Origin: Macrostomum lignano
Taxonomy: Eukaryota
Direction: 5' to 3'
Assembly (NCBI GenBank): GCA_002269645.1
Contig: NIVC01001279.1
Coordinates: 62,001 to 126,000, forward strand
DNA length: 64,000 bases
This document shows, piece after piece, positions 5,596-63,050 of this stretch (position 1 is its first letter; the number at the start of each line of letters is the position of its first letter). The notes under the pieces are model-generated. The model was not told the DNA's origin, did no database searches, and was given only the letters and a program-made list of their open reading frames with translations. The position numbers and the translations under genes were made by a program.

Positions 5596-8500
5596 ATGTC
5601 TTCGTTTAATCCTTTCGAATTATCATTTTTTCATTCGCTAGGCCAGCAAACCAGTTACAGTACAGCCTCGTCAGGCGTTGCTGAAGGAACCTTCAATTGG
5701 CCTATGATGAAGCTGCCGCAGTTTCTTCAAGGCCAGCCGGCGACGGGAGCGAATTATGAGCACGCGAGAGTTGACCTAATAGAGAAGGAGCTTTGGCAAC
5801 AGTTTCACGCCCTAGGAACTGAAATGGTGATTACTAAGAGTGGCAGGTGAGGTTCTGGATGCATGGCTATCATTGGGAAGCTTGCAGATTGTGTTCAAGT
5901 AAAGTCGATGTTGTATTTTCGGGAGTGGAGCTTCAAGAAATAAGTTAAATTTAGGTGTCATTTCTAGCGCCACTTCTGTAGCGCGAAATGTATAGCGCCA
6001 CTTTTATAGCGCCATCTCTATAGCGCCACTTTTATAGCGCCATCTCTATAGCGCCACTTTTATAGCGCCATCTCTATAGCGCCACTTTTATAGCGCCATC
6101 TCTATAGCGCCACTTTTATAGCGCCATCTCTATAGCGCCACTTTTTAGCGCTGTCTCTATAGCGACATCTCTATAGCCCCAACTCTGTAGCGCCATCTCT
6201 AATAGCGCCACTTTTTAGCGCTATCTCTATAGCGCCACTTTTTAGCGCTATCTCTATAGCGCCACCTCTATAGCCCCAACTCTGTAGCGCCATCTCTATA
6301 GCGCCATGTCTATAGCGCCACTTCTTAAGCCCCACTTCTTTAGTGCTATCTCTATAGCGACATCTCTATAGCGCCACTTCTTTAGCGCTATCTCTATAGC
6401 GACATCTCTATAGCGCCACTTCTTTAGCGCTATCTCTATAGCGACATCTCTATAGCGCCACTTCTTTAGCGCTATCTCTATAGCGACATCTCTATAACGC
6501 CACTTCTTTAGCGCTATCTCTATAGCGACATCTCTATAGCGCCACCTTCTATTACGCCACTTCTGTAGCGCTATCTCTATAGCGACATCTCTATAGCGCC
6601 ACCTTCTATTACGCCACTTCTGTAGCGCCATCTCTATAGCGCCACTTCTTTAGCGCTATCTCTATAGCGAAATTTCTATAGCGCCATCTCTATAGCGCCA
6701 CTTCTTTAGCGCTATCTCTATAGCGAAATTTCTATAGCGCCACTTCTATTACGCCACTTCTGTAGCGCCATCTCTATAGCGCCACTTCTTGCCCCAATAA
6801 AATGCCCTGTGCATGTAAGCTGCGTAATGTACTGTGCGCGAATAGTTTCTCAATTAACTAACAAGTGAAAATTTTGTCCATTTGTTTAGTTTCTATGCCC
6901 GTTGTTAGCCAGTTGACTTCTCCATAATGTAAATAGTACGGGACATCGCTGCGATTGTATGGACAATTAATTATTAGACAGCTAATGCATTTGAGTAAGC
7001 AAGCAGTTTTGGCGACACAATGTCTGCGTTTGTTTGCGCAACTCTGCTTTTTTGTGCTCAAGTAGAGCGTTTTAGTATATATGACATGGTGTTTTGTGAG
7101 TTATCGCTTGCATCTCTGCACACTGACTCTACTCTGTGCAAAAATTTTCTAGGTCGAAATTTCTGTTAAATTTAGCTAGACAGATGAGCCTTGATGACTT
7201 GAAAACAGAGGCAGGGATAGGAAGGGTAGAGAGTGAGGGTGGAGATAGAGAGAGAAGATGAAGAGGGAGAGAAGATAGAGAGAGAGAGAGGAGATAGGGA
7301 TAGAGAGGGGAGAGGAGATAGAGAGGGAGAGAGGATAGAGAGGGGAGAGGAGATATAGATAGAGAGGGAGAGAGGATAGAGAGGGGAGAGGAGATATAGA
7401 TAGAGAGGGAGAGAAGATAGAGAGGGAGAGAGGATAGAGAGGGGAGAGGAGTTATAGATAGAGAGGGAGAGAGGATAGAGAGGGGAGAGGAGACATAGAT
7501 AGAGAGGGAGAGAGGATAGAGAGGGGAGAGGAGATATAGATAGAGAGGGAGAGAGGATAGAGAGGGGAGAGGAGATATAGATAGAGAGGGAGAGAGGATA
7601 GAGAGGGAGAGGAGATATAGATAGAGAGGGAGAGAAGATAGAGAGGGAGAGAGGATAGAGAGGGGAGAGGAGTTATAGATAGAGAGGGAGAGAGGATAGA
7701 GAGGGGAGAGGAGACATAGATAGAGAGGGAGAGAGGATAGAGAGGGGAGAGGAGATATAGATAGAGAGGGAGAGAGGATAGAGAGGGGAGAGGAGATATA
7801 GATAGAGAGGGAGAGAAGATAGAGAGGGAGAGAGGATAGAGAGGGGAGAGGAGATAGAGATAGAGAGGGGAGAGGAGATAGAGAGGGAGAGAGGATAGAG
7901 AGGGAGAGAGGAGATAGAGATAGAGAGAGGAGATAGAGATAGAGAGGGAGAGAGGATAGAGAGGGAGAGAGTATAGATGTTGATAGAGAGAGGTGATAGA
8001 GGGAAAGAGGAGATGGTGAGGGAGAGGAGGAGAGCCATCAAAAGCAAGTATAATTTTGAGTCAAGAATCAGGTTTTGCACTAGGAGTCAGAAGTTCCGGA
8101 AACTTCTGCACGTGCATGCCATGCGCACATAACTGTGTGTCAATCCGTCATAAAATCTAATTTATTGAGTCCATGTAATTACGCTCGTAGAAATCAATTA
8201 CCTTTGCCTCCAAGACCAAGTAAAGCAATCAGCACAATGTAAACAATGCTCTTTTGTAGGCGATTTTTCCTGAAAAGAAACTGTGTTTCTTTTGCTATTA
8301 TTATCGTTTCTGCAGTCAATTCTATCTTAGCCAATTCAGCAGGCTGCTTTTAAGACACATCACATTTTTTCTTTTTGTGTGAATTAGCGTCAAAAGCCCA
8401 GATTTGAATTGGCGCCAAAAACCCTGATTTGAATTGGCGCCGAAACCCAGTTTAAATTGGTGCTAAAAAACTCTTCCCTAGAACTTGGGGTTCAAATTAA

Positions 8501-11500
8501 ATTCAAACTATAACATTCGTGATACTGATATCTATTTAAATTTTTCTTTGGTTGTTTCGTTCGTTTTTTGTTACCGGCGTTCAATTTAAACCGACACATT
8601 AAAACATATTTTAGTAATAACATTAAATTGTAACACAAATTCGTTAAAAAACTACTCAAAATTAACCCTTTCGTTGCAGACGAATGTTTCCACCGTTTAA
8701 AGTGAAGATATCCGGTTTGGATAGAACAGCCAAATACGCAATGCTGATGGATATTGTGCCTGTTGATGACTGCAGGTGAGTTTTTCTATACTTTTATGGA
8801 TAGCCTTTGACCAGATATTTTTGGGTCGTTATCAACATGCTTTTTGTGTCCGTGGTAGTCAGTTTTATGATTAGTTTTTGGTGTGCGACGGATAATTTTG
8901 TACATGTAGTTTTGTGTCTGTCTGTGACAGGTAGTTTTGTGTCTGTGACAGGTAGTTTTGTGTGTGTGACAGGTAGTTTTGTGTGTGTGACAGGTAGTTT
9001 TGTGTCTTCGGTAGGTAGTTTTGTGTCTTAGGGCGGATGCTGCAGTGTCAGGAGAGACAAACGATTCACATTTCTCCAATCGCAGGTACAAATTCCACAA
9101 CTGCAGCTGGGTAATAGCTGGCAAGGCCGACCCGGAAATGCCCAAAAGGATTTATATCCACCCGGACAGCCCCTGCACAGGGGAGCAGTGGATGCAAAAG
9201 ATTGTCAGCTTTCACAAGCTTAAGCTGACCAACAACGTGTCAGATAGGCACGGATTTGTAAGTTGCTTTTGATTTAACTTTCCCGCCACAGTTTCAAGGT
9301 CGTTTTTTAAAAGGAGATTTTTACAAAATGGTTTCAGTTTCCTTTTAAAGTTAAACTTTTCAACTGCGATTCCAAGGTCATCTTCAAACGAAAACTTTCC
9401 ATCAAATAGTCTGCAAGGTTATCATTCATCTTCATTAATCTTCATCAATTATCTTATTCATCTTTAAACGAAAACTTTCCATCAAGACTTCAAGGTCATT
9501 TCTAAAATAAAAATTTCCATCATGCCTTTCAAGGTCATATCCAAACGAAAACGTTCAAGACTTCAAGACTTCAAGGTCATCTTCAAGGAAAGATACAAAT
9601 TTCAAGGTCATCTTCGACCGAAAACTTTCGATTAAGACTTCAAGGTCATTTCCAAGTTAAAAATCTCCACTTAGACTTTTAAAACCATTTCCAAACGGAA
9701 ACCTCTTATGGCTTCCAACCACCCTTCCGCCAACAGACCATCTTGAACTCCATGCACAAGTATCAGCCCAGATTTCATCTGATTTGCTCCAGCGAACTTC
9801 ATCGCTTGCCATTTGCGCCCTATCGATCGTTCGCCTTCGCCGAGACGCAATTCGTGGCCGTGACTGCCTATCAGAATGAGCGAATCACGCAGCTCAAAAT
9901 CGATCACAATCCGTTTGCTAAAGGCTTCCGGGAGAGCGGCGGCGGTGGGAGGAGCTCAAAGAAAATGTTTGTTGAGCTTTGACTGATTTCATTTGACTCT
10001 GGGGTGTCAGTTGGTTGTCCAGTGATGTGTCAGCTGGTTGTCCAGTGATGTGTCAGCTGGTTGTCCAGTGATGTGTCAGCTGGTTGTCCAGTGATGTGTC
10101 AGCTGGTTGTCCAGTGATGTGTCAGCTGGTTGTCCAGTGATGTGTCAGCTGGTTGTCCAGTGATGTGTCAGCTGGTTGTCCAGTGATGTGTCAGCTGGTT
10201 GTCCAGTGATGTGTCAGCTGGTTGTCCAGTGATGTGTCAGCTGGTTGTCCAGTGATGTGTCAGCTGGTTGTCCAGTGATGTGTCAGCTGGTTGTCCAGTG
10301 ATGTGTCAGCTGGTTGTCCAGTGATGTGTCAGCTGGTTGTCCAGTGATGTGTCAGCTGGTTGTCCAGTGATGTGTCAGCTGGTTGTCCAGTGATGTGTCA
10401 GCTGGTTGTCCAGTGATGTGTCAGCTGGTTGTCCAGTGATGTGTCAGCTGGTTGTCCAGTGATGTGTCAGCTGGTTGTCCAGTGATGTGTCAGCTGGTTG
10501 TCCAGTGATGTGTCAGCTGGTTGTCCAGTGATGTGTCAGCTGGTTGTCCAGTGATGTGTCAGCTGGTTGTCCAGTGATGTGTCAGCTGGTTGTCCAGTGA
10601 TGTGTCAGCTGGTTGTCCAGTGATGTGTCAGCTGGTTGTCCAGTAATGTGTCAGCTGGTTGTCCAGTGATGTGTCAGCTGGTTGTCCAGTGATGTGTCAG
10701 CTGGTTGTCCAGTAATGTGTCAGCTGGTTGTCCAGTGATGTGTCAGCTGGTTGTCCAGTGATGTGTCAGCTGTTTGACTGAAGTGTCAGGTTAGACTGTA
10801 GCGTTTCAGAGTAGACTATAGGGTGTCAGAGTAGATTGTAGGGTGTCAGTATAGACTGTAGGGTGTCAGGATAGACTGTAGGGTGTCAGGATAGACTGTA
10901 GGGTGTCAGGGTAGACTGTAGGTTGTCAGGGTAGACTATAGGGTGTCAGGGTAGACTGTAGGTTGTCAGGGTAGACTGTAGGGTGGCAGTATAGACTGTA
11001 GGTTGTCAGGGTAGACTGCAGGGTGTCAGGATAGACTTTAGGGTGTCAGGGTAGACTGTAGGGTGTCAGGATAGACTGTAGGGTGTCAGGATAGACTGTA
11101 GGGTGTCAGGGTAGACTGTAGGGTGTCAGGGTAGACTATAGGGTGTCAGGGTAGACTGTAGGGTGTCAGTATAGACTGTAGGGTGTCAGGATAGACTGTA
11201 GGGTGTCAGGGTAGACTATAGGATGTCAGGGTAGACTGTAGGTTGTCAGGGTAGACTGTAGGGTGGCAGTATAGACTGTAGGTTGTCAGGGTAGACTGTA
11301 GGGTGTCAGGATAGACTTTAGGGTGTCAGGGTAGACTGTAGAGTGTCAGGATAGACTGTAGGGTGTCAGGATAGACTGTAGGGTGTCAGGGTAGACTGTA
11401 GGGTGTCAGGGTAGACTGTAGGGTGGCAGTATAGACTGTAGGTTGTCAGGATTGACTGTAGGGTGTCAGGATAGACTTTAGGGTGTCAGGGTAGACTGTA

Positions 11501-14500
11501 GAGTGTCAGGATAGACTTTAGGGTGTCAGGGTAGACTTTAGGGTGTCAGGATAGACTGTAGAGTGTCAGGATAGACTGTAGGGTGTCAGGATAGACTGTA
11601 GGGTGTCAGGGTAGACTGTAGGGTGTCAGGGTAGACTATAGGGTGTCAGGGTAGACTGTAGGGTGTCAGGATAGACTTTAAGGTGTCAGGATAGACTGTA
11701 GGGTGTCAGGATAGACTGTAGGGTGTCAAGATAGACTGTAGGGTGTCAGAGTAACCTGTGGGGTAGACACTAGGATGTCAGAAACAACCCTGCGAAGTCA
11801 CAGAAGACACTACAAATTCTCCCCTCCACAAAACCAACCGCAGAAAACTGTCAGTTGATCATCAGCTCGAACAGCAGTGCGGCCAACACCAGTCTCATCT
11901 TGTGCACCGCCGACCGCAGAGTCAAGTCGCTGACAGCAGCTTCGAGCGACGCCTGCAACTGGAATTCGATCAAGAGGTGCCACCTGAGGAGGAGACTTCC
12001 AGGTGGCGACTGGAATCGGACGAATCACGGAGCCGGAGGAACCCCCAGCGTCCGTTGACGAGGGCAGACGGAGGGTCCAGCCCGGATAACACGGTCACTT
12101 CTAGCGACATGCCCGACTGTACGAGTCGCGAAGGTAGGGCTTGATTCTTGAGCCATCCCTACCCCTCTGAGCCCCGCCACCCCATCCCTACCCTTCTGAG
12201 CCCTGCCACCCCATTCCTACCCTTCTGAGCCCCGCCACTCTATTCCTACCCTTCTGAGCCCCGCCACTCTATTCCTACCCTTCTGAGCCCCGCCACTCTA
12301 TTCCTACCCTTCTGAGCCCCGCCACCCCATTCCTACCCTTCTGAGCCCCGCCACCCCATTCCTACCCTTCTGAGCCCCGCCACTCTATTCCTACCCTTCT
12401 GAGCCCCGCCACCCCATTCCTACCCTTCTGAGCCTCGCCACCCCATTCCTACCCTTCTGAGCCCCGCCACTCTATTCCTACCCTTCTGAGCCCCGCCACC
12501 CCATTCCTACCCTTCTGAGCCCCGCCACTCTATTCCTACCCTTCTGAGCCTCACAACCCCATCGCATCATTCTGAGCCCCGCCACCCCATCCCTACTCCT
12601 CTCGACCCCGTCACCTCACTCTAAACCCTATCTACAGTCATAATAAACCGACTGTGATGAGTGGTTTTACATTCGTTTATTCTCTTGAAATAACTCCTGT
12701 TTCATTATGGTTTTCTCCACTTGTAGTCATATTTTCTGCACAAAAGCTAACCATTGAGTTCGTCTTTTTTCGAGCGTTTTTTAATCCCGCCACTGTTTAT
12801 CTAGGCTGTCAACCAACCTGTCATAAATTATGTGCAGGGAAATTTATAAAAATTCCCGTATAGTTTACAATTCTGTTGAGCGAAATGGCCACCTGTCGAA
12901 GTGATGTAAGCATGTCAATCACAGATGGGCTTCTGGGCATGATTTTCGGGGATTTCTGATTACCTAAAAAATGTGCCTACGATTTTGAAGGCTTTGATGA
13001 AAAAAAGCAGTTTCAGAACTGGCACGTTTATATAGCATGGGAGAAATTTGGTAGATAGGATAGAGGAATGTTAATTAGGAAGTGGGCAATATAGGACAGG
13101 GACAGAAAAATGAAAAGGATATTGATGGGGGAGATAAGAGACGGATATAGGGGGAGATAAAAGACGGAGATAGGGAAGATAAGAGACGGATATAGAGGAG
13201 ATTAGAGACGGATATTGGGAGAGATAAGAGACGGATATTGGGGAAATAAGAGACGGAGATTGGAGGAGATTAGAGACGGAGATTGGAGGAGATTAGAAAC
13301 GGAGATTGGAGGAGATTAGAGACGGAGATTGGAGAAGATTAGAGACGGAGATTGGAGGAGATAAGAGACGGAGATTGGAGAAGATTAGAGACGGAGATTG
13401 GAGGAGATTAGAGACGGAGATTGGAGGAGATAAGAGACGGAGATTGGAGGAGATTAGAGACGGAGATTGGAGGAGATTAGAGACGGAGATTGGAGAAGAT
13501 TAGAGACGGAGATTGGAGGAGATAAGAGACGGTGATTGGAGGGGATAAGAGACGGACATAGGGGGAGATTAGAGACGGAGATTGGAGAAGATAAGAGACG
13601 GAGATTGGAGGAGATTAGAGACGGAGATTGGAGAATATTAGAGACGGAGATTGGAGAAGATTAGAGACGGAGATTGGAGGAGATAAGAGACGGTGATTGG
13701 AGGGGATAAGAGACGGACATAGGGGGAGATTAGAGACGGAGATTGGAGAAGATTAGAGACGGAGATTGGAGGAGATTAGAGACGGTGATTGGAGGGGGTA
13801 AGAGACGGAGATTGGAGGAGATTAGAGACGGAGACTGGAGGAGATTAGAGACGGAGATTGGAGGAGATAAGAGACGGAGATTGGAGAAGATAAGAGACGG
13901 AGATTGGAGAAGATTAGAGACCGAGATTGGAGAAGATTAGAGAGAGAAGATTAGAGACGGAGATTGGAGGAGATAAGAGACGGAGATTGGAGATGATAAG
14001 AGACGGAGATTGGAGAAGATTAGAGACGGAGATTGGAGGAGATAAGAGACGGTGATTGGAGGAGATAAGAGACGGTGATTGGAGGGGATATGAGACGGTG
14101 ATTAAAGGATAAGATATTCAAACAACAGGCAGAATAAGTTTTCGCTCTGACACACTTGCAGACTTACCAACTCGCAGCAATGGGAATCTTTCCTGGCACC
14201 TGCACCAACCGTGGCTGCAACTTTCGACTCAAGAGAACCAGCTGCCACTAATGCTTCATCAACCTGGTCTATCATCGATATCGACATCGACGGAAACTCG
14301 AGCCGCCCAGGTGACTGCGGCGGCTGCGGCGGCAGCGGCGGCGGCTGCGGCAGCGACGGCTATCGAGCTGTCGCAGCAGCTCATCCTGAGAAGGCATCAA
14401 ACATTGCCTACGCGGAGTTCTAAGCGATTATCGTCGAATGATTTTTCCAAAATTCACACTCTCATTGAAACGAAAGCCAATGACAAATCTGAGGCTGAGG

Positions 14501-20148: not shown

Positions 20149-23100
20149 TCACAGTCTAATCATATCTGTGACGGCTTTCTGCGAGCGCAGCTCAGCGCTC
20201 ATCTTGGTCAGACCGATCAGGTGCAGAATTCGAATTAATTCGCCTGAAGTTGCTAAATGAGATTTCTCCTCTTGCCAGGCTAGAAATCCCTGCATTGGTG
20301 GTAGTTGAGATGAAGATGTGGATGCTTGAATTGATGTCCAGTACTAACAGATGCACGTGTACCAGCTGCAGCGGGGCGCGCCAACTACAGAGGGGGCGCC
20401 AGCTACAGAGGGGGCGCCAGCTACAGAGGGGGCGCCAGCTACAGAGGGGGCGCCAGCTACAGATGAGGCGCCAGCTACAGATGGGGCGCCAGCTACAGAT
20501 GGGGCGCCAGCTACAGATGGGGCGCCAGCTACAGAGGGGGCGCCAGCTACAGAGGGGGCGCCAGCTACAGAGGGGGCGCCAGCTACAGATGGGGCGCCAG
20601 CTACAGATGGGGAGCCAGCTACAGAGGGGGCGCCAGCTACAGATGGGGCGCCAGCTACAGATGAGGCGCCAGCTACAGATGAGGCGCCAGCTACAGATGG
20701 GGAGCCAGCTACAGATGGGGCGCCAGCTACAGATGGGGAGCCAGCTACAGATGGGGAGCCAGCTACAGATGGGGAGCCAGCTACAGAGGGGGCGCCAGCT
20801 ACAGATGAGGCGCCAGCTACAGAGGGGGCGCCAGCTACAGATGGGGCGCCAGCTACAGATGGGGCGCCAGCTACAGATGAGGCGCCAGCTACAGATGGGG
20901 CGCCAGCTACAGATGGGGAGCCAGCTACAGAGGGGGCGCCAGCTACAGAGGGGGCGCCAGCTACAGATGGGGCGCCAGCTACAGATGGGGCGCCAGCTAC
21001 AGAGGGGGCGCCAGCAACAGATGGGGCGCCAGCTACAGATGAGGCGCCAGCTACAGATGGGGAGCCAGCTACAGATGGGGCGCCAGCTACAGATGGGGCG
21101 CCAGCTACAGATGGGGCGCCAGCTACAGATGAGGTGCCAGCTACAGATGGGGCGCCAGCTACAGAGGGGGCGCCAGCTACAGATGGGGCGCCAGCTACAG
21201 AGAGGGCGCCAGCTACAGATGGGGCGCCAGCTACAGAGAGGGCGCCAGCTACAGATGGGGCGCCAGCTACAGAGAGGGCGCCTGCTACATAGATAAATTA
21301 CGTCCTTATAGATTTTAGCATCTACACTCACTTGAGGAATTCTCTCCTTGGACTTCTCCTTGCCCTTGAATTCTTTCTCAATGGCGGTCATGCGATCCTC
21401 GGAGACCCCCAGCTTTCTAAACAGATGCCGGAAGTCGGCCTTGTCGATTCTATACTGAATAGCTTCGATCATGCGCTTGACGAGGCTCTCTGTTAAACAA
21501 AGTAGTCAAGGACTTTCAAATGTTAAAACATTGTTACTTTTTGTTGGTTCTACCACCGACAGAGGACTACCACCCCAAGCTCTAAACCTCAAGGACTACC
21601 ACCCCAAGCTCTAAACCTCAAGGACTACCACCCCAAGCTCTAAACCTCAAGGACTACCACCCCAAGCTCTAAACCTCAAGGGCTACACCTCAAGGGCTAT
21701 ACACCTCAAGGGCTATACACCTCAAGGGCTACACCTCAAGGGCTACACCTCAAGGGCTACACCTCAAGGGCTACACCTCAAGGGCTACACCTCAAGGGCT
21801 ACACCTCAAGGGCTACACCTCAAGGGCTACACCTCAAGGGCTACACCTCAAGGGCTACACCTCAAGGGCTACACCTCAAGGGCTACACCCAAGGTGCAGC
21901 GCGAACTTACGCTCTCGTTCGTCGTATTTGTGCACAAAAGCTCCAATTGGTTTGACTTCTCCGCCAAAGACAATCTCAGCTGGTGGCACTTTACTAGGAT
22001 TACCTTCGGCATTGAAATTTACTGACTGACCGCCGAGCTCTTCAATGCTGCGAGGCAAATAGGCGATGAGGTTGTTCTCCAGTTTCAGCGTATTCAAGCT
22101 CTTGAGCTGGCGAACAGCGTCTGGAACGACTTTGAGACGGTTATTTTGTAGCAGCAGGTCGCGAAGCTGAGTCAGGCGACCGAGTGTTTCAGGCAAGCTG
22201 GTCAACTCGTTGTCTGACAGATCCAGATGAGTCAGCAAGTCCAGGCAGCCGATGTCTTCGTGAATTTGCAGCAGCTTCTTGCCAGAGCCTTGGTGAAGAC
22301 GCAGCTGTCTGAGAGCCGGCACGACGCAGACCTCGGTGGGAAAGTCACTAAAGTTGTTATTGGACAGGTTGAGACTTTCCAAGCAGGTGAGTTGCTTCAA
22401 ATCTTCTGGCAATTGGGCGATGCGATTGCCGGCCAAGTCCAGCTGCTCCAGCTGCTTCATCCGGCAGAGGACATCGGGAAACTCCTCGATTGCGTTGCCT
22501 GGCAGCTGCAGGATGCGAAGCTGTCGGAGTTTCTTGAAGTCGTCGGGCAAATTGGCGAGCCTGTTTCCCGTCAAGTTGAGCACCTGAAGCGACTCGAGTT
22601 CGCATAGTGACTGGGGAAATTCTTCAAAGTCGTTGTTCTCCAGAGTCAGCTGTTTCAGGCGTTTCAATCGGCCAAGCTCGTCGGAGACATCAGTCAGGCG
22701 GTTGTCTCCTAGTAGCAGAACCTCCAGAGCCGGAAGGGTGGCGATGATCTCCGGGAAAATCTCCAAGCCGTTGGAGCTCAAGTCGAGAATTGAAAGAATC
22801 TTTAAATTAGAGAACTCAAGCGGCAAAAATAGGATTCCATTCGATGCCAGATTGAGAACTCGGAGATTCGAGCAGAAGCAGAAGTTTTCGTCAAATTCTG
22901 TCAGGTCGGCCTTGCCCAAGTTCAGCTCCAGCAGGCAGCCCAATCGAGCCAGGCTGGTGGGAATCAGCTGCAGCGGATTGCCCTCAGCGTTCAGGTTCTT
23001 CAGCTCACTTAGGTAGCCAATCTCGTTAGGCAGCTCCTCGATATTATTAAACGACAGGTTGAGAATATCCAGTCTGGCTAACTTTGCTATTTCCTCCGGA

Positions 23101-23813
23101 ACTTCGCTTATTTGGTTGTGCGACAAGCCGAGCTCGACGAGACTCTCCAGATCAAAAATTTGGCAAGGCATGAATTCGAACTTGTTGTTGTCAAGCCGCA
23201 AAATTTGCAACTGTTCCAAACTGTCAAGCTGCCGGGGGAGCGAAGTCAATGAATTGCCATTCAATCGCAATGATTGGAGAGCAACCAAATTGCAGACGCT
23301 ACCGCTGAGCTCCGTGAAACAGTTTGACTCAAGCACCAACGATTTCAGAGTCCAGTTCTTTGATCCGATCTCTGGTAGGCATTTAATTCGATTCGACCCA
23401 AGCGAAAGAACTTCGAGTCTTCGGAAAGAAAAGCAGAAATCAGGTATTTCAGTGATGCTATTCGAGCAGAGGTTAAGGAACTTTAAACTCTTGCATGATT
23501 CAAGAGAACCAGGCACTTCCCTTAGTCTGTTAAATGAAAGGTCTAAGCAAGTCAATTGGTAAAGGTTAATAGAAGACTTGGGAAAGCTCTCAATTCGGTT
23601 GTTGTTCGCCACGAAGTATTTCAATCCTTTTGCTGCCTCGAGAAAATCGGAAATCGAATGTAGCTCATTATCGCTAACGCATAAAAATCCAAGTTTCTTA
23701 ATATCAAAAGCCTTCGCAGGGATCTTCTTTAGCCCCCTGTTGCTCAGATTTAAACACACAGTACCGTTTGAAGTGTAGCATTCATCCGAAAGCTTTTGCT
23801 TGGCTTCAGTCAT
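20149..23813 (-). CDS. LRRD1: Leucine-rich repeat and death domain protein (LRRD1-like); exons 23813-21911, 21489-21332, 20289-20149 (about 733 aa)
   Basis: The large exon has more than 20 LxxLxLxxNxL repeats. Splices GAG C|GTAAGT to TTTAACAG|AG (phase 1) and CAA|GTGAGT to AATGCAG|GGA (phase 0) add a death-domain-like segment DFRHLFRKLGVSEDRMTAIEKEF...GFLAWQEEKSHLATSGELIRILHLIGL. The start ATG (MTEAKQ) is inferred; the track ORF starts at a TTG at 23888. Confidence 0.8.
20372..21290. repeat. 18-bp minisatellite CCAGCTACAGA(G/T)GGGGCG (LRRD1 intron 2)
   Basis: About 51 units; stop-free in several frames. Confidence 0.97.
21560..21892. repeat. 29-bp then 14-bp (GGGCTACACCTCAA) minisatellites (LRRD1 intron 1)
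   Basis: Tandem units ending close to the splice donor. Confidence 0.95.
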
Positions 23814-24184
23814 GGCTTCAATATATGCCCAATATTTTAAACAGGCATGACACGTAGAAAGCGAAATGATTATAAAAAATCGACTCAAAATGTTAAACTA
23901 AAAGTAAACTATAGAGACAGATATTACTAGTTTATTTTTGTATGAAGGACAAAAAAATACAATAAAACATTTTTTCAACTAATTCCATTACTTTTTGAGT
24001 TAAAACTCAGGCAAAAATATTATTACGCAGTAGCAGTTGTTTTAATAGGAAATTTTTCTTGCTAATTTTACGTGTCATGAATTTGAATTTGATTCTACAG
24101 TATTTACTATTAACCATCGATTATATCCTGCATTCATTAACTGAGAGCTCCCTCTGATTTTTGAAAGACGTGATACCATATTAC

Positions 24185-30752: not shown

Positions 30753-31421
30753 ATGCAGTTAGCCAACTTCACTCTACTCCGCCTGCTGAGCCCAATCTCC
30801 ATCAGGTGCACTCCAGCAGCAGTCATCAATCGCACTCTGCACTCTAGTCCGGCTCTGCTTGGCAAAAAGTATGCAAAATATTATTTCACACCAAAGAAAA
30901 TCTTTCGCAAAGAAGAAATCTACAGGGTGCCAAAGACTCAATTGATTTTGCCGCACGAGCGCCTTGATCCATTGAATATCCCGGAGCCTTCGGCGCCAAC
31001 TGCAACTGAATCAGGCCTCCTTGAACAGTTAGCTTCCGCTGTCAATCATGAGCAGTCAACATCCGGCCGACCCTTTGCCATAGTCCACCTGGTTGGCAAG
31101 CAGTACAAAGTGTCCGAAGGCGATCTAGTTCAATTAGTTGGCAAAAGTTTGCTAGCCGAGCTGGGCGACGAACTTGTCTTAGAGAAGGTGCTGGCTCTGG
31201 GATTCACAGACTTCACTCTCTATGGCAGACCCATTCTGTCTCGGGATTGTGTCACAGTCCGAGCCACCGTAGTCGAGAAGACCCTGGAGCCGCCAAAAAT
31301 TCGATTCGAATTTCGTAAGCGACAAAATTTTCGTCGAATGAATATCCATCAAACTAATGCGACTGTGCTGCGTATTGGGTCGATTGAGTTTAATAAGCCA
31401 GCGGTTCAACAGGCTCTGTAA
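30753..31421 (+). CDS. MRPL21: Mitochondrial ribosomal protein bL21m, intronless
   Basis: L21 motifs FAIVHLVGKQYKVSEGDLV, LEKVLALG...TLYGRPIL, VRATVVEKT and RRMNIHQ...TVLRI. Basic/hydroxylated N-terminal presequence-like region. Confidence 0.93.
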   Translation: MQLANFTLLRLLSPISIRCTPAAVINRTLHSSPALLGKKYAKYYFTPKKIFRKEEIYRVPKTQLILPHERLDPLNIPEPSAPTATESGLLEQLASAVNHEQSTSGRPFAIVHLVGKQYKVSEGDLVQLVGKSLLAELGDELVLEKVLALGFTDFTLYGRPILSRDCVTVRATVVEKTLEPPKIRFEFRKRQNFRRMNIHQTNATVLRIGSIEFNKPAVQQAL

Positions 31422-32883: not shown

Positions 32884-33621
32884 ATGCTGTCATTTCTGTC
32901 TCGTCGAATGTTGGCTGCTCCCGCGCGGCTCTCTCTGCCCCAGCGCTGCCTTAGCGACAAGCTATTCGTCCATCGGGACACGCCAGAAAACAATGTAGAC
33001 ACTCCGTTCGAATTTACACCAGAAAATCTCGAACGAGCTCGAAGTTTGATTTCAAACTATCCTGTTGGACACGAGCGCGCCGCTATGATGCCGCTGTTAG
33101 ATTTGGCTCAGCGCCAGCACGGCGGCTGGTTGCCGATTTCTGCTATGCACTGCGTTGCCGACATGTTGAAGGTGCCGCGTATGCGAGTGTACGAAGTGGC
33201 CACCTTCTACACTATGTACAATCGCGACCCGATTGGCAAATATCATGTACAGATCTGTACTACAACTCCCTGCATGCTGGGCGGCTGCGGCTCCGGACCA
33301 ATATTGGACACTTGCAAACGGGTGCTGGGGTTGAAGCCGGGCCAGACAGACTCTGAGCGGCTGTTCACCCTGTCTGAAGTGGAATGCCTTGGCGCCTGCG
33401 TCAACGCGCCAATGGTGCAGATTAACGACGACTACTACGAAGACCTGACACCGGAGGATACTGAAGCCATCCTCATGGCGTTGAAGCGGGGCGAGAAGCC
33501 GCCGAAACCCGGGCCGCAGTCTGGCCAGGACTGGCGGCACTGCTGCGAACCCAAGGGCAGTTTGACCTCGCTGACCGAACCGCCTAAAGGTCCTGGATTT
33601 AAAGTTCTGCCCGAACTTTGA
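32884..33621 (+). CDS. NDUFV2: NADH dehydrogenase (complex I) 24-kDa 2Fe-2S subunit, intronless
   Basis: [11 protein letters not shown]...[39 protein letters not shown], the Fe-S cysteines in CTTTPCML and [13 protein letters not shown], then [10 protein letters not shown]. Confidence 0.97.
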
Positions 33622-34400: not shown

Positions 34401-34507
34401 AAGGTCACACCATAGGTTTTTAAACAGAAGAATCAATATAGATCTGCATGTTGCTATCCTCTTCACATGGTTATTCGTTGCATTCATGCTAATACCTCGC
34501 CGCTATC

Positions 34508-37229
34508 ATGTCGCAAAAGCACTCTCAATCGATGATAAAATTCCTGGTATTTGCTTTAGGAATTTTTATTAGTTATTTTGTCTACGGATTGTTGCAGGAG
34601 AAAATGTGAGATTTTTCTATAACTGATAAAAATGCTTTATATTTATGCAATAAATATGTTTATTGCTGCTAGCTAAAATTTAACTATAATTTCATTTCGC
34701 AGCACAAAGACTGAGTACGGTCTGGACAAACAGACTTTTACGTTCACCTGCAGTATGGTGCTTATTCAGTGCGCCATTAATGCGGCATTCGCCGTGATTG
34801 GTGAGTCTAAGTGTATTTGTGTGTGTTGGGGATCTTTGTTTCTTTTGAAATTGTGCTTCTCATTCTTTATTTCTGCTATATTATTGTCAGACTTTATTTC
34901 TAATGTTGTTCAGTCTTTGTTTTTGATGTATGCCGGTCTTTGTTTCTGATGGTAGGCGGCATTTGTTTCTTATGTGTGTCGGGTCTTTGTTTCTGATGGT
35001 TGGCGGCATTTGTTTCTTATGTGTGTCGGGTCTTTGTTTCTGATGTGTGACGGTCTTTGTTTCTGATGTGTGTCAGTCTTTGTTTCTGATGTGTGTCAGT
35101 CTTTGTTTCTGATGTGTGTCGGTCTTTGTTTCTGTTGTGTGTCAATCTTTGTTTCTGATGTGTGACGGTCTTTGTTTCTGATGGTAGGCAGCATTTGTTT
35201 CTTATGTGTGTCGGGTCTTTGTTTCTGATGTGTGACGGTCTTTGTTTCTGATGTGTGTCAGTCTTTGTTTCTGATGTGTGTCGGTCTGTTTCTGATGTGT
35301 GTCGGTCTTTGTTTCATGTCTTTGTAATAGTTAATACATAGATTTCCTGCATTCCAGTTCCCGTGGTAATTTCATCTGGATCTTCATCGGCTGACAGCAC
35401 CTGGCGAGTTCCACCGTCAGCCTCCGTGTATTCATTTGCACTGGCTGCGTTCACCTACATCACCGCAATGTGGTCTAGTAATGCCGCACTTCAGTTCGTA
35501 TCTTATCCCACACAGGTGAGCTCAATACTTATGGATTTATAATTCAGTCATTTTAGGAAAGGCAAATGAAATGCAGAGAGATCAGGGTGTGGGGTGCAGG
35601 GAGATCAGGGTGTGGGGTGCAGGGAGATCAGGGTGTGGGGTGCAGGTAGATCAGGGTGTGGGGTGCAGGGAGATCAGGGTGTGGGGTGCAGGGAGATCAG
35701 GGTGTGGGGTGCAGGTAGATCAGTTGTGGGGTGCAGGGAGATCAGGGTGCAGGGAGATCAGGGTGCAGGGAGATCAGGGTGCAGGGAGATCAGGGTGCAG
35801 GGAGATCAGGGTGCAGGGAGATCAGGATACACGGGAAAAGGTACAAAGCCTGTGCCTCTACCAATCGACATCCCAGGTGCTGGGGAAGTCATGCAAGCCG
35901 ATCCCAGTGATGCTGTTAGGCCTGCTATTCGGCAAACGCTATCCAATGATAAAATACCTGCTAGTGCTGATCATTGTTGTTGGCGTATCGTTATTCCTGA
36001 TGAAAGACAGCAAAGGCACAGGCCCGGACACCGATCACAGCTTTGGTTTTGGAGAGTTTCTATTGGTAAGTTAATGCTTGTTGTGTTTTTTTTCAATTGG
36101 TTTCAATAATTGGAAACCTGTCTTGAATTGTTCATATTTCCTATTGACAATCATTTCAGCTGGTCTCTCTGCTATGCGACGGACTCACTGGTTTAGTGCA
36201 GGATCGAATCTGTTTAAAGCATAACTCAGTGTCCAGCTTTGCTATGATGTTCCAGATGAATTTGTGGTCTACTATCTATCTGTTTGTTGGTAAGCTTTAT
36301 TGCTCTCTATTTCATTGAAAATTTTGAGGCACTTTTGTTTGCAAAGCACTGCTTCTTCTGTTAGCAAAGCACTGCTTCTTCTGTTAGCAAATCACTGCTT
36401 CTTCTGTTAGCAAATCACTGCTTCTTCTGGTAGCAAATCACTGCTTCTTCTGTTAGCAAATCACTGCTTCTTCTGTTAGCAAAGCACTGCTTCTTCTGTT
36501 AGCAAATCACTGCTTCTTCTGTTAGCAAATCACTGCTTCTTCTGGTAGCAAAGCACTGCTTCTTCTGGTAGCAAATCACTGCTTCTTCTGGTAGCAAAGC
36601 ACTGCTTCTTCTGGTTGCAAATCACTGCTTCTTCTGGTAGCAAATCACTGCTTCTTCTGTTAGCAAATCACTGCTTCTTCTGGTTGCAAATCACTGCTTC
36701 TTCTGTTAGCAAAGCACTGCTTCTTCTGGTTGCAAATCACTGCTTCTTCTGGTAGCAAAGCACTGCTTTTTCTGCTTATTTTGCCTTTAAAATCACAGTT
36801 TTTGTCAAAAATTGACTACCCGACAATTCAATTAAGGATTCTCTCCCTTCTGTCACTGTTTTAGTTGCCGTAGCAACAGGCGAACTGCCTCAGTTCGTCG
36901 CATTCGTCGTGCAATACCACACCGTACTGTGGGACATCCTGCTGTTTAGCCTGTGCAGCGCCCTCGGCCAGCTGTTCATCTTTGCCACCGTGGTTAATTA
37001 TGGCCCGTTGAACTGCTCCTTGGTGACCACTACTCGAAAGTTCTTCACCATTCTCGGCTCCGTGATTCTGTTTGGTCACCCGCTGACTAACAGGCAGTGG
37101 CTTGGCACCTGCCTGGTCTTTGTTGGCCTTTTTGGCGAGTCTCTGGTTAAGAGGAAGCCGAATCTGGTTGCTCCTGCTGCTTCTGCTGACGCTGCGGTTG
37201 CTAATGGCAATGGGAAGAAAGCTCAATAG
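34508..37229 (+). CDS. SLC35B1: Solute carrier 35 member B1 (ER nucleotide-sugar / ATP-ADP transporter family); exons 34508-34605, 34703-34800, 35358-35515, 35877-36065, 36160-36289, 36865-37229 (345 aa)
   Basis: [58 protein letters not shown] and [23 protein letters not shown]. All junctions are GT-AG and phase-consistent (1038 nt). The C-terminal KKAQ is a KKxx ER-retrieval motif. Confidence 0.93.
34930..35320. repeat. TCTTTGTTTCTGATGTGTG minisatellite (SLC35B1 intron 2)
   Basis: About 22-bp degenerate units. Confidence 0.9.
35575..35826. repeat. G-rich 23-bp then 14-bp array (SLC35B1 intron 3)
   Basis: GATCAGGGTGTGGGGTGCAGGGA followed by GATCAGGGTGCAGG. Confidence 0.92.
36340..36775. repeat. 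23-bp minisatellite AAATCACTGCTTCTTCTGTTAGC (SLC35B1 intron 5)
   Basis: About 19 units. Confidence 0.95.
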
Positions 37230-42440: not shown

Positions 42441-43129
42441 CGTATACTGCCCGAAGGGGGGGGGCTACTACCTGGCTAGTCCCATTTACTAAAAATGAAT
42501 TTTCTGTCTCTAGGTAAGAGTGCGATTTGATTTCAGAAAAACGGCTCAACCGATTTTCATAAAACTTGCACCGTTCGATCAGAAATTTTCTGGTGACGGT
42601 TCATGTGTCGTGGCTAAGAAATTGCTCAGTACTAAGGGGATGAAATATTCGGGAAACATACGCTCGTAGTATCTAATTGTTACCATCCAAAAGCACTAAA
42701 AATGAGTCACTAGATGTCTTTCCAAATGAATATTTTTCAGAGTAAAAGAATAATTCAGAAACACAAGAGCAGAGAAAAAAATTTCGCCTTTTTAATCGCT
42801 TTTGTTACACCCCCCCCCTATCCTGCCAAATTCTGCTTAATAAAGCTCTAAACAGATTCCTAGCGTAGCCCTGCATTGCTGCTGGATAATTGGAAAGCAG
42901 GAGAAAAAGGCTTAAAGCTTTTTCGCAGCAAAACAGCCAGACTTACGGCAGACACATGTGGCCTAAAATGAGATTCATTCATGGGTTTCAGCAGTATTTA
43001 GCGGTGCATGCCTTCATTGTTCTGCAAATATACTGGTATTTTGAGCTACCTAAACAGAGCGCTGAAATTCGATTTGAATCTCAAACTGCACTATAGCGGC
43101 TTGCTAATTGTCATAGCAGTCCCTAGAAT

Positions 43130-43830
43130 TCACTATAGAAATCACTCTGGGAGTCACTATAGGAGTCACTCTAGAAGTCAATCTACGAGTCACTCTAGGA
43201 GTCACTCTGGGATCACTTAAGGGATCACTCTAGGGTCACTCTGGGATCACTTAAGGGATCACTCTAGGAGTCACTCTGGGATCACTTAAGGGGTCACTCT
43301 AAAAATAACTCTAAGAATCACTCTAGCCATCAATCTAGGAATCACTCTAGGAGTCACTCTAGGAATCACTCTGGGAGTCACTCTAGAAGTCCCTTTAAGA
43401 GTCACCCTAGGAGTCACTCTAAAAATAACTCTAAGAATCACTCTAGCCATCAATCTAGGAATCACTCTAGGAGTCACTCTAGGAATCACTCTAGGAGTCA
43501 CTCTAGAAGTCCCTTTAGGAGTCACTCTAGGAGTCACTCTGGGATCACTCTAGGAGTCACTCTAGAAATCCCTTTAAGAGTCAATCTAGGAGTCACTCTG
43601 GGATCACTTAAGGGGCCACTCTAGGAGTCACTCTAAAAATAACTCTAAGAATCACTCTAGCCATCAATCTAGGAATCACTCTAGGAGTCACTCTAGGAAT
43701 CACTCTAGGAGTCACTCTAGGAATCACTCTAGGAGTCACTCTAGGAATCACTCTAGGAGTCACTCTAGGAATCACTCTAGGAGTCACTCTAGAAGTCCCT
43801 TTAAGAGTCACTCTGGGAACTCTGGGAATA
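43130..43830. repeat. 12-bp AGGAGTCACTCT array
   Basis: Tandem units with higher-order blocks. Confidence 0.93.
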
Positions 43831-44093
43831 TCCCTAGCTATTTCTCGTCCCCTGTTTCTCATTCCCTGCTTCTCATCTTTATCACTAATTAGTTACTCAA
43901 ACGCTGAGTAGCATCCTTCCCGTCATTATCATTAGGGAACCCCAATATTTTGTTGGTTCACAATCGGACTTCTTAGAATATGTTTATAAAACATTCAGCT
44001 CGCATTCTCGCATGCCAGGGCGCTCGCACATCGCCGCGGCTCGACAACTGTTGAAATAGCATCGAATCACGCCACCAGCATAATTTAACAGCC

Positions 44094-46573
44094 ATGAAAA
44101 TCTCTCGCCGCGTAGCCGCCCAGCTTCTGCTAATCTTCATCGCCCAATCAGCGCTGATGTACAGGGAAACTGAAAGCATGAAACTCCTGCAAGCTGGTGA
44201 GGATCTGGCTTTCTTACATTTTATCGCGCCTTATAAAGTCATTTTCACTACATATCGGTTACAAGAAGTCCGAATTCCAAAATGTATTTTTCGCCTTTTA
44301 AAAAATCTAGTGTAAATCTATCGGCAGGTAAACATCAGAGATCCCGATTTGTTTGCATGGTTTAGAATTTTTTTACGCTGCATATCATCTTAGTAGATCT
44401 TTGCATTTGTGCGCCTTGTAAAGGTATTGACGCTACATATCGGATACAGAAAATACGAGTTCCAAAACTTATTTTCCGACTTATAAAGGTACTTACGCAG
44501 CATATCGGCTAGTAAAGATTGAGATTCCTATTTATTTTCACGGTTTATAAAGATTTTTACGCTACATATCGGTTTATTAGTCCTCTACATCTGTGCGCCT
44601 TGTAAAGTTATTGACGCTACATATCGACGGTTTTCGACTACGCAAACAGCTCTGCAGATTGTCCTTTTGGCAAGAAAACCTTAACGACTTTCTAAGAGTA
44701 AATTGTAGATCTGATTCTTCTGAACTTCTCTGAGCCTAGCTTCACAAACAAAGATTAGAGGACCAAAAGAGGGACAACGCAAGGACGCAGCTGCGAGGCG
44801 AGAAAGTTGAGGCTGTAAAATGTAGCAGCCAGAAGGCTAAGACGGAACTCAAAGGAAGAAGAAGCCTCCTTTTCTGCTGTCAGTTGCTGCGTGACTTGCA
44901 TCGTGTCGTCACAAGGTCTGTCTGGGACTCGGTACTTAGAAGCGGGGAGCGGGGACATTTCGGATTCTAAATCTAACAATTTGGCTGCAAACAGAGCAAC
45001 GCCTTCTATGGAAACTCGATGAGCTTATTCAGACCTCGGTCATTATCAGTTGATTATCCAATATTTGCCTGAGCACGAGTCCGAAATTTATGCGGACGGC
45101 CTATTTTCGGACAGCACAGACTCCTCTACGAGGTTCTCGTATACATGACATCCTATCAGTTCGTTTGCGTTATACGTTGAAAATATTTTTATTATCGCAC
45201 GGAATCGAACCCGGGCACTTGCGTTTAGAGTCGGACGCGTTTACCGCTGAGCTACTGCGGCCCCCTCCTTCTAGGCAGTTTGACAGGCTATTTAAAGTTC
45301 TTAAAGCCCCAAACACCTCTAAACATCTCAAAACACCTCTAAACACATCTAACCACCTCTAAACATCTCTAAACACCTCTAAACATCTCTAAACACCTCT
45401 AAACACATCGAACCACCTCTAAACATCTCTAAACACCTCTAAACATCTCTAAACACCTCTAAACACATCGAACCACCTCTAAACATCTCTAAACACCTCT
45501 AAACATCTCTAAACACCTCTAAACATCTCTAAATACCTCTAAACACCTCTAAACATCTCTAAATACCTCTAAACACCTCTAAAAACCTCTAAGCACCTCT
45601 AAACATCTCTAAACACCTCTAAATATCTCTTAACATCTCTAAACACCTCTAAACATCTCTAAACACCTCTAAACATCTCAAAACACCTCTAAACATCTCT
45701 AAACACCTCTAAACATCTCTAAACACCTCTAAACACCTCTAAATATCTCTAAACACCTCTAAACATCTCTTAACATCTCTAAACACCTCTAAACATCTCT
45801 AAACACCTCTAAACATCTCTAAACACCTCTAAACATCTCAAAACACCTCTAAACATCTCTAAACACCTCTAAACATCTCTAAACACCTCTAAACATCTCT
45901 AAACACTTCTAAACATCTCTAAACACCTCTAAACACATCTAACCACCTCTAAACATCTCTAAACACCTCTAAACATCACTAAACACCTCTAAACACATCT
46001 AACCACCTCTAAACATCTCTAAACACCTCTAAATATCTCTTAACATCTCTAAACACCTCTAAACCTCTCTAAACACCTCTAAACATCTCAAAACACCTCA
46101 AAACATCTCTAAACACCTCTAAACATCTCTAAATACCTCTAAACACCTCTAAACATCTCTAAACACCTCTAAATATCTCTAAACACCTCTAAACATCTCT
46201 TAACATCTCTAAACACCTCTAAACATCTCTAAACACCTCTAAACATCTCAAAACACCTCTAAACATCTTTAAACACCTCTAAACATCTCTAAACACCTCT
46301 AAACATCTCTAAACACCTCTAAACATCTCTAAACACCTCTAAACATCTCTAAACACCTCTAAACATCTCTAAACACCTCTAAAAACCTCTACTGCAGGCG
46401 CTGCCTACAAGCGATTTCTGTACTACTCGAACGGCAACTGCGAGACATTCGATATACGATGCTTCAGCCAGCGCGACTGCCAGATGGCTTACGGTCCGGG
46501 GTATCAGTGCGTGATTCTGAGATGCTCACTGAGCTGCCAGCTGCTGCCATCTGACAGAGGCCGCATTGCCTGA
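44094..46573 (+). CDS. Novel secreted cysteine-rich prepropeptide, 92 aa; exons 44094-44196 and 46398-46573
   Basis: Donor GCTG|GTGAGG (44196) and acceptor CTACTGCAG|GC (46397) are both phase 1. Product: MKISRRVAAQLLLIFIAQSALMYRETESMKLLQAGAAYKR-FLYYSNGNCETFDIRCFSQRDCQMAYGPGYQCVILRCSLSCQLLPSDRGRIA*. It has a signal-peptide-like N-terminus, a dibasic KR and six Cys. AATAAA motifs lie near 46725-46736. Confidence 0.75.
45195..45265 (-). mobile_element. tRNA-derived SINE head (A and B boxes), not an intact tRNA
   Basis: The minus strand reads GGGGGCCGCAGTAGCTCAGCGGTAAACGCGTCCGACTCTAAACGCAAGTGCCCGGGTTCGATTCCGTGCGA. Pol III A box TAGCTCAGCGG and B box GGTTCGATTCC are present, but the D, anticodon and acceptor stems do not pair. 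Confidence 0.6.
45310..46390. repeat. 10/20-bp AAACATCTCT-AAACACCTCT array (intron of the peptide gene)
   Basis: Ends immediately before the acceptor at 46397. Confidence 0.97.
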
Positions 46574-46789
46574 GTCAGTTCGGCATCAACTCAAACTAAA
46601 ATGATTTCAGGACCAATGCAACAACTTCGTCTACATTTAAGTAGGGAATGGTTCAACATGCTGCCAACTCTGAACAAATTAAAACAATTTCTTCATTTTA
46701 TCGGCTACTAATCTCTTTTGGAGAAATAAAAATAAAGACAAAGGGTTCGATTGGAATTGAATTCTTGGTTAACCACATTTCAGAGCAAG

Positions 46790-47125
46790 ACTACATTCTA
46801 CTCTCATTGCATTCTATTCTGTACTATCATTGCATTCTATTTTCTACTCTCATTGCATTCTATTCTCTACTCTCATTGCAATCTATTCTCTACTCTCATT
46901 GCATTCTATTCTCTACTCTCATTGCTTTCGATTCTCTACTCTCATTGCATTCTATTCTCTACTCTCATTGCTTTCGATTCTCTACTCTCACTGCATTCTA
47001 TTCTCTACTCTCATTGCATTCTACTCTCTACACTCACTGCATTCTATTCTCTACTCTCATTGCATTCTATTATCTACTTTCATTTCTACTCTCACTGCAT
47101 TCTTTTCTCTACTCTCACTGTTTTC
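46790..47125. repeat. 23-bp CTCTCATTGCATTCTATTCTCTA minisatellite
   Basis: Explains ORFs 46648-47245. Confidence 0.93.
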
Positions 47126-61959: not shown

Positions 61960-63050
61960 GGATTAAGCTACAGGGATCTGGGAGAATAGGGGATTAAGCT
62001 ACAGGGATCTGGGAGAATAGGGGATTAAGCTGAAGGGATCTGGGAGAATATGGGATTAAGCTGAAGGGATCTGGGAGATTAGGGGATTAAGCTACAGGGA
62101 TCTGGGAGAATAGGGGATTAAGCTACAGGGATCTGGGAGAATAGGGGATTAAGCTACAGGGATCTGGGAGATTAGGGGATTAAGCTACAGGGATCTGGGA
62201 GATTATGGGATTAAGCTACAGGGATCTGGGAGATTAGGGGATTAAGCTACAGGGATCTGGGAGATTAGGGGATTAAGCTACAGGGATCTGGGAGATTAGG
62301 GGATTAAGCTACAGGGATCTGGGAGATTAGGGGATTAAGCTACAGGGATCTGGGAGATTAGGGGATTAAGCTACAGGGATCTGGGAGATTATGGGATTAA
62401 GCTACAGGGATCTGGGAGAATAGGGGATTAAGCTACAGGGATCTGGGAGATTAGGGGATTAAGCTACAGGGATCTGGGAGATTAGGGGATTAAGCTACAG
62501 GGATCTGGGAGAATAGGGGATTAAGCTACAGGGATCTGGGAGATTAGGGGATTAAGCTACAGGGATCTGGGAGATTAGGGGATTAAGCTACAGGGATCTG
62601 GGAGATTAGGGGATTAAGCTACAGGGATCTGGGAGATTAGGGGATTAAGCTACAGGGATCTGGGAGAATAGGGGATTAAGCTACAGGGATCTGGGAGAAT
62701 AGGGGATTAAGCTACAGGGATCTGGGAGATTAGGGGATTAAGCTACAGGGATCTGGGAGATTAGGGGATTAAGCTACAGGGATCTGGGAGATTAGGGGAT
62801 TAAGCTACAGGGATCTGGGAGATTAGGGGATTAAGCTACAGGGATCTGGGAGAATAGGGGATTAAGCTACAGGGATCTGGGAGAATAGGGGATTAAGCTA
62901 CAGGGATCTGGGAGATTAGGGGATTAAGCTACAGGGGTCTGGGAGATTAGGGGATTAAGCTACAGGGATCTGGGAGAATAGGGGATTAAGCTACAGGGAT
63001 CTGGGAGAATAGGGGATTAAGCTACCTGGATTTGGGAGAATTGGGGGATT
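61960..63050. repeat. 31-bp GGGGATTAAGCTACAGGGATCTGGGAGATTA minisatellite
   Basis: About 34 units. Confidence 0.97.

Follow-up and report, generated by a model that had tools for sequence, protein, structure and literature searches.

A two-exon gene of Macrostomum lignano for a predicted secreted six-cysteine peptide and its family of paralogues

The 64,000-nucleotide (nt) stretch of Macrostomum lignano DNA analysed here (contig NIVC01001279.1 of assembly GCA_002269645.1, called the window below; its position 1 is position 62001 of the record) carries the short gene Mlig004136.g2, split by a long, repeat-filled intron (Table 1), whose product has the layout of a prepropeptide with six cysteines. 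A preliminary description of this DNA had joined a signal-peptide exon to a short second exon, and this two-exon model held in every detail: all coordinates, the junction 44196/46398, the product of 92 amino acids (aa) and the cysteine spacing were reproduced exactly by a scripted rebuild of the coding sequence (CDS). The frame opens at the ATG in the context ACAGCCATGA, a reading of the sequence confirmed by the rebuild, with a stop in the same frame 14 codons upstream, and the spliced CDS of 279 nt encodes the 92-aa product MKISRRVAAQLLLIFIAQSALMYRETESMKLLQAGAAYKRFLYYSNGNCETFDIRCFSQRDCQMAYGPGYQCVILRCSLSCQLLPSDRGRIA. The predicted signal peptide consists of the n-region MKISRR and the h-region VAAQLLLIFIA, and the −3/−1 rule is satisfied by AQS/A after residue 19. 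In all three genomic copies of the gene, the TATAAAA motif is found at −109/−110, while the polyadenylation hexamers occupy the region 105–158 nt downstream of the stop codon, where 3/3 copies contain ATTAAA (+105) and the first AATAAA (+152) but copy g3 (L002) lacks the second AATAAA (+158).

Table 1. Positions in the window of the peptide gene, its repeats and its neighbours
Feature	Position	Strand	Remarks
Exon 1, CDS	44094-44196	+	103 nt, ends in phase 1; signal peptide and start of propeptide; same exon in PAA69942.1
Predicted signal peptide MKISRRVAAQLLLIFIAQS, codons 1-19	44094-44150	+	hydropathy and −3/−1 heuristic
GT-AG intron, phase 1	44197-46397	+	2,201 nt; donor G/GTGAGG, acceptor CTACTGCAG/G at 46397/46398
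Exon 2	46398-46573	+	176 nt including stop
Propeptide end (G)AAY and invariant dibasic K39-R40	46398-46414	+	KR codons at 46409-46414
Predicted mature peptide	46415-46570	+	52 aa, 5,964 Da reduced, net charge +1, six Cys spaced 6-5-9-4-3
Stop codon TGA	46571-46573	+	sequence reading and CDS rebuild
TATAAAA box-like motif	43985-43991	+	109 nt 5′ of ATG; putative core promoter
Polyadenylation-signal hexamers	46678-46736	+	ATTAAA 46678; AATAAA 46725 and 46731
Dispersed imperfect direct repeats, 50-77 nt	44211-44629	+	inside intron
20-bp minisatellite (AAACACCTCTAAACATCTCT), 55 copies	45311-46391	+	stops 6 nt 5′ of acceptor; fills half of intron
tRNA-like fragment, A-box-/B-box-like sequence (GGTTCGATTCC)	45190-45270	−	inside intron; sequence reading
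Minisatellite, 12/24-bp unit	43123-43818		just 5′ of promoter
Minisatellite, 23-bp unit	46797-47084		just beyond poly(A) signals
(TTAG)n tract	47475 to at least 48000
Leucine-rich-repeat protein, long single open reading frame	21876-23888	−
Ribosomal protein L21, mitochondrial-type	30753-31421	+
NDUFV2-like 2Fe-2S thioredoxin-like protein, single open reading frame	32884-33621	+
UAA/TPT nucleotide-sugar transporter	34502-37229	+
Mcm10	50485 to beyond 56573	−

The gene had been described as hidden, which proved to be wrong. Its product is identical to PAA69942.1 of GenBank (hypothetical protein BOX15_Mlig004136g2) and A0A267FAB9 of UniProt, an entry derived from RNA-seq transcripts, and the gene of PAA69942.1 is the same 2,480 bases of the same contig. 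The GenBank annotation pipeline combined a filtered genome-guided StringTie/TACO transcriptome with de novo assembly, trans-splicing/poly(A) evidence and TransDecoder (Wudarski et al. 2017, PMC5730564). Since assembled RNA-seq transcripts underlie the annotation, the deposited intron reflects an assembled spliced transcript. Two more copies, g1 and g3, are present in the same order of genes, that is, a UAA-type nucleotide-sugar transporter, the peptide gene and Mcm10 on the opposite strand, and the length of the gene in the three copies is 2480, 2469 and 1819 bp. These syntenic copies fit the recent genome duplication of M. lignano to which two reports refer (PMC5730564; PMC10733133). The three CDSs differ at 4–7 of the 279 positions by four synonymous and four non-synonymous changes, none of them at a cysteine, and the frame is intact in each. 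Their exons are 97–100% identical and the adjacent non-coding DNA is 93–100% identical; as the non-coding DNA is nearly as similar as the exons, the copies say little about selection, and the case for constraint has to be made from the paralogues.

Such paralogues were found by an exhaustive phmmer search over 1.84 billion representative proteins, which detected three further groups, exclusively from M. lignano and matched with E values between 6e-8 and 3e-5: Mlig025436 (92 aa, E 6e-8), Mlig006190 (117 aa, E 9e-7) and Mlig017203 (182 aa, 5′-partial, E 3e-5). Their GenBank proteins (PAA49477.1, PAA84257.1 and PAA81298.1, respectively) are all hypothetical and uncharacterised. The overall identity of these three groups is 29–43%. 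The genes of all four groups share one structure, in which two coding exons are separated by a GT-AG intron in phase 1 that follows closely on the signal peptide, and the first exon is 103, 97, 91 and 250 nt long and ends in phase 1 in every group. All precursors possess an N-terminal hydrophobic core (Kyte-Doolittle 2.65–3.42 over 11 residues) with plausible −3/−1 sites. The mature peptides are 48–53 aa long with cysteines spaced 6-5-9/10-4-3, and their net charge is +1 in Mlig004136, −1 in Mlig025436, and +5 and +3 in the two other members. The cleavage contexts are YKR, RAKR, SKR, KTKR and NRKR, several of which are of the furin type, R/K-x-K-R. The three groups are true homologues of Mlig004136 and have its precursor layout, its phase-1 intron and its KR-F-x3-S-x-G-x-C start; they differ from it by one extra residue in the C3–C4 loop, by spacers of 42 to ~83 residues, and by other tails and net charges. 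All members carry, after a signal-like N-terminus and a variable spacer, the invariant family signature KR-F-x3-S-x-G-x-C-x6-CF-x3-DC-x9/10-C-x4-C-x3-C.

A fifth member, for which apparently no gene had been called, was revealed by tblastn of the fetched loci on contig NIVC01000540.1, where it is convergent with Mlig017203g3 at a distance of ~3 kb downstream (10360–11650 of locus L006, minus strand; exon 1 at ~11401–11650, exon 2 ending at the stop at 10360). Its mature peptide KRFLYHSNGDCPVFRVGCFNSYDCYRQTGVYYYRCVVHGCTVRCFDMRPYMKSTK retains 6/6 cysteines and is preceded by an NRKR site. The family consists of at least five loci, each with two or three recent genomic copies, and has so far been seen only in M. 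lignano. Several UniProt models from an older assembly (P0004, P0005, P0009, P0012 and P0014) join the peptide exons to sequence from their surroundings or continue across the intron, and bear misleading automatic names (DUF4149, BPTI/Kunitz, Ion_trans); in P0005, exon 2 reads on into unrelated sequence past residue 71.

The conservation within the family is distributed very unevenly along the precursor. Identity between groups is 12–32% in the part before the KR (38 to ~83 residues), 43–61% from the KR to the last cysteine (43–44 residues) and 0–17% in the C-terminal tail (6–11 residues), so that the high-identity core begins exactly at the dibasic site, which is itself invariant. The residues identical across the groups are, in Mlig004136 numbering, K39, R40, F41, S45, G47, C49, C56, F57, D61, C62, C72, C77 and C81. 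The prepropeptide architecture proposed in the preliminary description is thereby upheld, since a hydrophobic N-terminal core, a divergent spacer, the invariant KR and a conserved core from the KR onward occur in all four groups. Its suggestion that the terminal DR-G-R could be an amidation site found no support in the comparison: in the family alignment RGR is confined to the Mlig004136 copies, and the tails of the paralogues (VPVPRQ, HHVNNGL and MRPYMKSTK) have no conserved Gly-basic signal.

Selection on the mature region could be assessed in the duplicate pair at the Mlig017203 locus (5958–6943 versus 10360–11700, minus strand, of L006). The 5′ block of the pair, comprising exon 1 and ~700 nt of the intron, is 99.3% identical, while its 3′ part (3′ intron, exon 2 and untranslated region) is ~79% identical, so that the pair is a mosaic, which suggests gene conversion or partial duplication. 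In the mature region the proportions of non-synonymous and synonymous differences are pN 0.075 and pS 0.287, respectively, and their ratio of 0.26 indicates purifying selection on this part of the precursor. Accelerated evolution in the style of toxins, which could be read from the difference between the signal exon (99.6%) and the mature peptide (84% aa identity), was rejected because the 99.3% block also spans ~700 nt of intron, as expected of a mosaic, and because of the low pN/pS ratio.

The cysteine framework could not be assigned to any described family. Pfam searches at E ≤ 10 returned sub-threshold noise only, with no ShK, Kunitz, defensin, toxin, knottin or WAP model among the matches, NCBIfam gave no match, and the PDB sequence searches, for which both the protein and the family profile served as queries, yielded chance matches only (E ~1) and no BPTI-type chain. 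The earlier statement that the spacing does not correspond to insulin, eclosion hormone or knottin was thus borne out by the lack of any curated-family match in Pfam, NCBIfam, the PDB and Foldseek, ShK and Kunitz included. DUF5556 (E 0.065), zf-TRAF_2, Nodulin_late (E 0.0011, below the cut-off), low-density lipoprotein receptor A (E 1.3) and nNOS fragments were dismissed as chance matches of cysteines or composition. The automatic names found in UniProt proved no more informative. The paralogue A0A267DLA0 is named ShKT domain-containing, but the names "ShKT" and "BPTI/Kunitz" differ between models of the same domain and neither is reproduced by Pfam, and the names "DUF4149" (177-aa P0004) and "Ion_trans" (1,437-aa P0014) sit on fused models of the older assembly.

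Comparison with individual frameworks led to the same result. With ShKT domains (PF01549; PROSITE PS51670) the family shares six cysteines within ~35–40 residues and the secreted context, and cnidarian ShK toxins often have a KR-flanked propeptide as well; however, the 8-4-10-3-2 spacing with the terminal C-x3-C-x2-C is replaced here by C-x4-C-x3-C, and PF01549 matched none of five sequences at E ≤ 10. The BPTI/Kunitz pattern (PF00014; C-x8-C-x15-C-x7-C-x12-C-x3-C) spans ~51 residues from the first to the last cysteine, in contrast to 33–34 in the family, and its profile gave no match. The adjacent CC at the end of β-defensins and big defensins is absent, the last two cysteines being three residues apart in every member. 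The WAP four-disulfide core, exemplified by SLPI, is likewise a small disulfide-rich domain, but it has eight cysteines in a different framework, whereas the family has six and no Pfam WAP match.

Structure prediction by AlphaFold2 of the Mlig004136 mature domain with alignment A2 gave a model containing a short strand, a helix at 26–33 and a hairpin of 37–41 and 45–50 (predicted local distance difference test, pLDDT, 73 overall and 85–87 in the core), and an independent AlphaFold model of the Mlig025436 domain (pLDDT 76) showed the same β-α-β-β layout; the core pLDDT over the two models is 85–90. Neither model had a significant counterpart in the PDB according to Foldseek (all E ≥ 0.9, template modelling score, TM, ≤ 0.5). 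The top rank for both was taken by half-SLPI, a WAP protein (E ~1, TM 0.43, root-mean-square deviation 5–6.8 Å), and scorpion K+-channel toxins recurred among the weak matches (noxiustoxin, tamapin, hongotoxin, Cn2 and kurtoxin among the scorpion toxins listed; E 3–9, TM 0.26–0.44). The family resembles cysteine-stabilized αβ (CSαβ) peptides, such as invertebrate defensins and short scorpion K+-channel toxins, in its size of ~4–6 kDa, its six cysteines and the predicted strand-helix-hairpin order, and the loop lengths of the charybdotoxin-type pattern, C-x5-C-x3-C-x10-C-x4-C-x1-C, resemble those of Mlig004136. Nevertheless, the CxxxC of the helix and the CxC of the last strand, which define CSαβ peptides, are replaced here by C-x5-C and C-x3-C, so that the family does not qualify as CSαβ by this motif, although a β-α-β-β order is predicted for it.

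Relatives outside M. lignano were found neither by the exhaustive phmmer search nor by word-index searches nor in JGI metagenome contigs, collections that apparently hold no other Macrostomum genomes or transcriptomes; the word-index searches with profile A2 and with P0008 added nothing new. The conservation described above is consequently one among M. lignano paralogues only. A match to duck (Anas platyrhynchos) XP_071890466 and its isoforms (E 4e-7) was rejected as a homologue. The duck protein consists of tandem repeats, and the match fell into five short stretches, the copies of its ...SWGSCEKFQLPCESYRTC... unit. Each unit has only three cysteines, and the resemblance was judged to be one of chance that the repeats amplify. 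In the literature searched, neither the four gene IDs nor the cysteine framework was mentioned.

The intron and the surroundings of the gene are rich in repeats, and minisatellites both flank and split it (Table 1). The tRNA-like fragment on the minus strand of the intron was rejected as a functional tRNA, as it was called neither by ARAGORN nor by Rfam; its 20-mer occurs once in the window, and the fragment may represent a degenerate tRNA gene or, alternatively, the head of a short interspersed element derived from a tRNA. The neighbours of the peptide gene are ordinary housekeeping or receptor-type genes, and no cluster of secreted-peptide genes was detected in the window.

The gene model, the existence of a family, its conserved KR junction and cysteine framework, the purifying selection on its core and the absence of a known-family match were observed; on this basis, the following course of processing can be proposed. 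The N-terminal ~19 residues would direct the chain into the endoplasmic reticulum and would then be cleaved off at AQS/A, and the ~20-residue spacer would be removed by a protease of the furin/prohormone-convertase type after Lys39-Arg40. A 52-aa peptide of ~6 kDa starting at F41 would thus be released, whose six cysteines would pair in three disulfides around the short strand, the helix and the β-hairpin. The secreted peptide would finally serve as a ligand of the hormone, neuropeptide or paracrine type by binding a specific extracellular protein target, either a receptor or a channel. Judged from the sequences, it is highly probable that the gene encodes a genuine secreted, KR-processed six-cysteine peptide, with secretion, cleavage and disulfide bonding predicted. 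The whole reading, namely a real, transcribed and annotated two-exon gene for a KR-processed 92-aa prepropeptide, the peptide of which serves as an extracellular ligand, is the best explanation we can offer, and we lean towards it. The ligand function in particular is proposed more tentatively.

Binding to a specific target is favoured because conservation is concentrated in the mature core, of which the flexible N-terminus to be exposed by cleavage (F-x3-S-x-G-x-C) is a part, while the signal, the spacer, the tail and the net charge vary. Families of the venom type typically show the opposite pattern. Non-specific membrane attack is less likely as the mode of action, as a charge range of −1 to +5 speaks against a cationic membrane-lytic mechanism common to the members. 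The likeness to convertase-processed neuropeptide and hormone precursors consists in the predicted signal, the divergent spacer and the conserved dibasic site abutting a conserved segment under purifying selection, but the family differs from them by the lack of a conserved amidation glycine, by yielding one large disulfide-rich product instead of short repeated peptides, and in that the searches turned up no orthologue from another flatworm or phylum. A more specific model, in which the members would be hormone- or neuropeptide-like ligands of the Macrostomum lineage built on an undescribed three-disulfide β-α-β-β framework (C-x6-C-x5-C-x9/10-C-x4-C-x3-C), with the KR-exposed N-terminus activating a receptor or gating a channel, is doubtful in our judgement.

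Several points weigh against a role of the peptide as a ligand and the constraint invoked for it. No relatives were found outside M. lignano in the collections searched, although ancient neuropeptides usually have a wider range and restriction to one lineage is seen more often in secretions that serve defence or reproduction. An amidation signal is not conserved, and every precursor contains a single peptide. The pN/pS ratio comes from one pair with 19 substitutions, the three Mlig004136 copies are too alike to reveal exon-specific constraint, and no family member is mentioned in the published supplements examined.

The peptides could instead be defence or toxin effectors, i.e., lineage-specific cysteine-rich mini-proteins with a defensin- or scorpion-toxin-like scaffold, which would be released at the KR and would block channels or act as antimicrobials against microbes, prey or predators. 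The confinement of the family to M. lignano would suit such a role, as would the succession of signal exon, phase-1 intron and mature-peptide exon, a layout common in animal toxin and antimicrobial peptide genes, the cationic nature of two members (+5 and +3), the β-α-β-β models with scorpion K+-channel toxins recurring among their weak matches, and the local tandem inverted duplication at the Mlig017203 locus. However, none of the Foldseek matches was significant, the CxxxC...CxC motif is missing and no toxin or defensin model of Pfam matched; Mlig004136 is near-neutral and Mlig025436 acidic, the family is small, and its mature region is the conserved part, with a pN/pS of 0.26 rather than diversifying selection. 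We regard this explanation as unlikely on balance.

An exocrine product with a reproductive or structural role, made in the prostate as seminal fluid or in a cement/shell, rhabdite, mucus or adhesive gland, is less probable still. M. lignano is reported to have many gland-specific transcripts, putative seminal fluid proteins among them (PMC5977470), and a small secreted orphan protein of a lineage-restricted family would be at home in this category. The supplements of the seminal-fluid screen contained no family member, a weak counterargument as the files carry older transcript IDs. The mature core is under purifying selection, unlike the reproduction-related genes of Macrostomum, for which one report describes rapid evolution (PMC7336406), and an invariant dibasic site would be unexpected in bulk structural secretions. 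Finally, the shortness of the frame (92 aa), the repeat-filled intron and the name "hypothetical protein" might raise the suspicion of an annotation artefact, a non-coding or spurious transcript with a short open reading frame that resembles a peptide precursor by chance. Four divergent groups, however, preserve the frame, the six cysteines, KR-F, S45, G47, F57, D61 and the intron phase, and the frame is intact in 3/3 copies, with no cysteine changed by their four synonymous and four non-synonymous differences. The family-wide conservation of frame, cysteines, KR and intron phase, together with the pN/pS of 0.26, makes a chance reading frame or a non-coding transcript very unlikely, and we give this explanation hardly any weight.

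The immediate consequence of these results is a correction, as the gene is not an undiscovered one and some of its copies bear misleading automatic names. With the gene itself already deposited in GenBank and UniProt, the novelty is confined to recognising a small uncharacterised family whose cysteine framework has no match, and invertebrate genomes commonly harbour orphan families of cysteine-rich secreted peptides. As a model for regeneration, stem cells and sexual selection, M. lignano is open to transgenesis and RNA interference, and a compact family of processed, disulfide-rich secreted peptides with no recognisable relatives would be an easy target in it for in situ hybridisation, RNA interference, promoter reporters and peptide synthesis. 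Should the peptides be products of glands or of defence, they would represent one more orphan cysteine-rich peptide family of invertebrates; should they be ligands, they would be an addition to the poorly known signalling repertoire of flatworms and possibly a new small disulfide scaffold.

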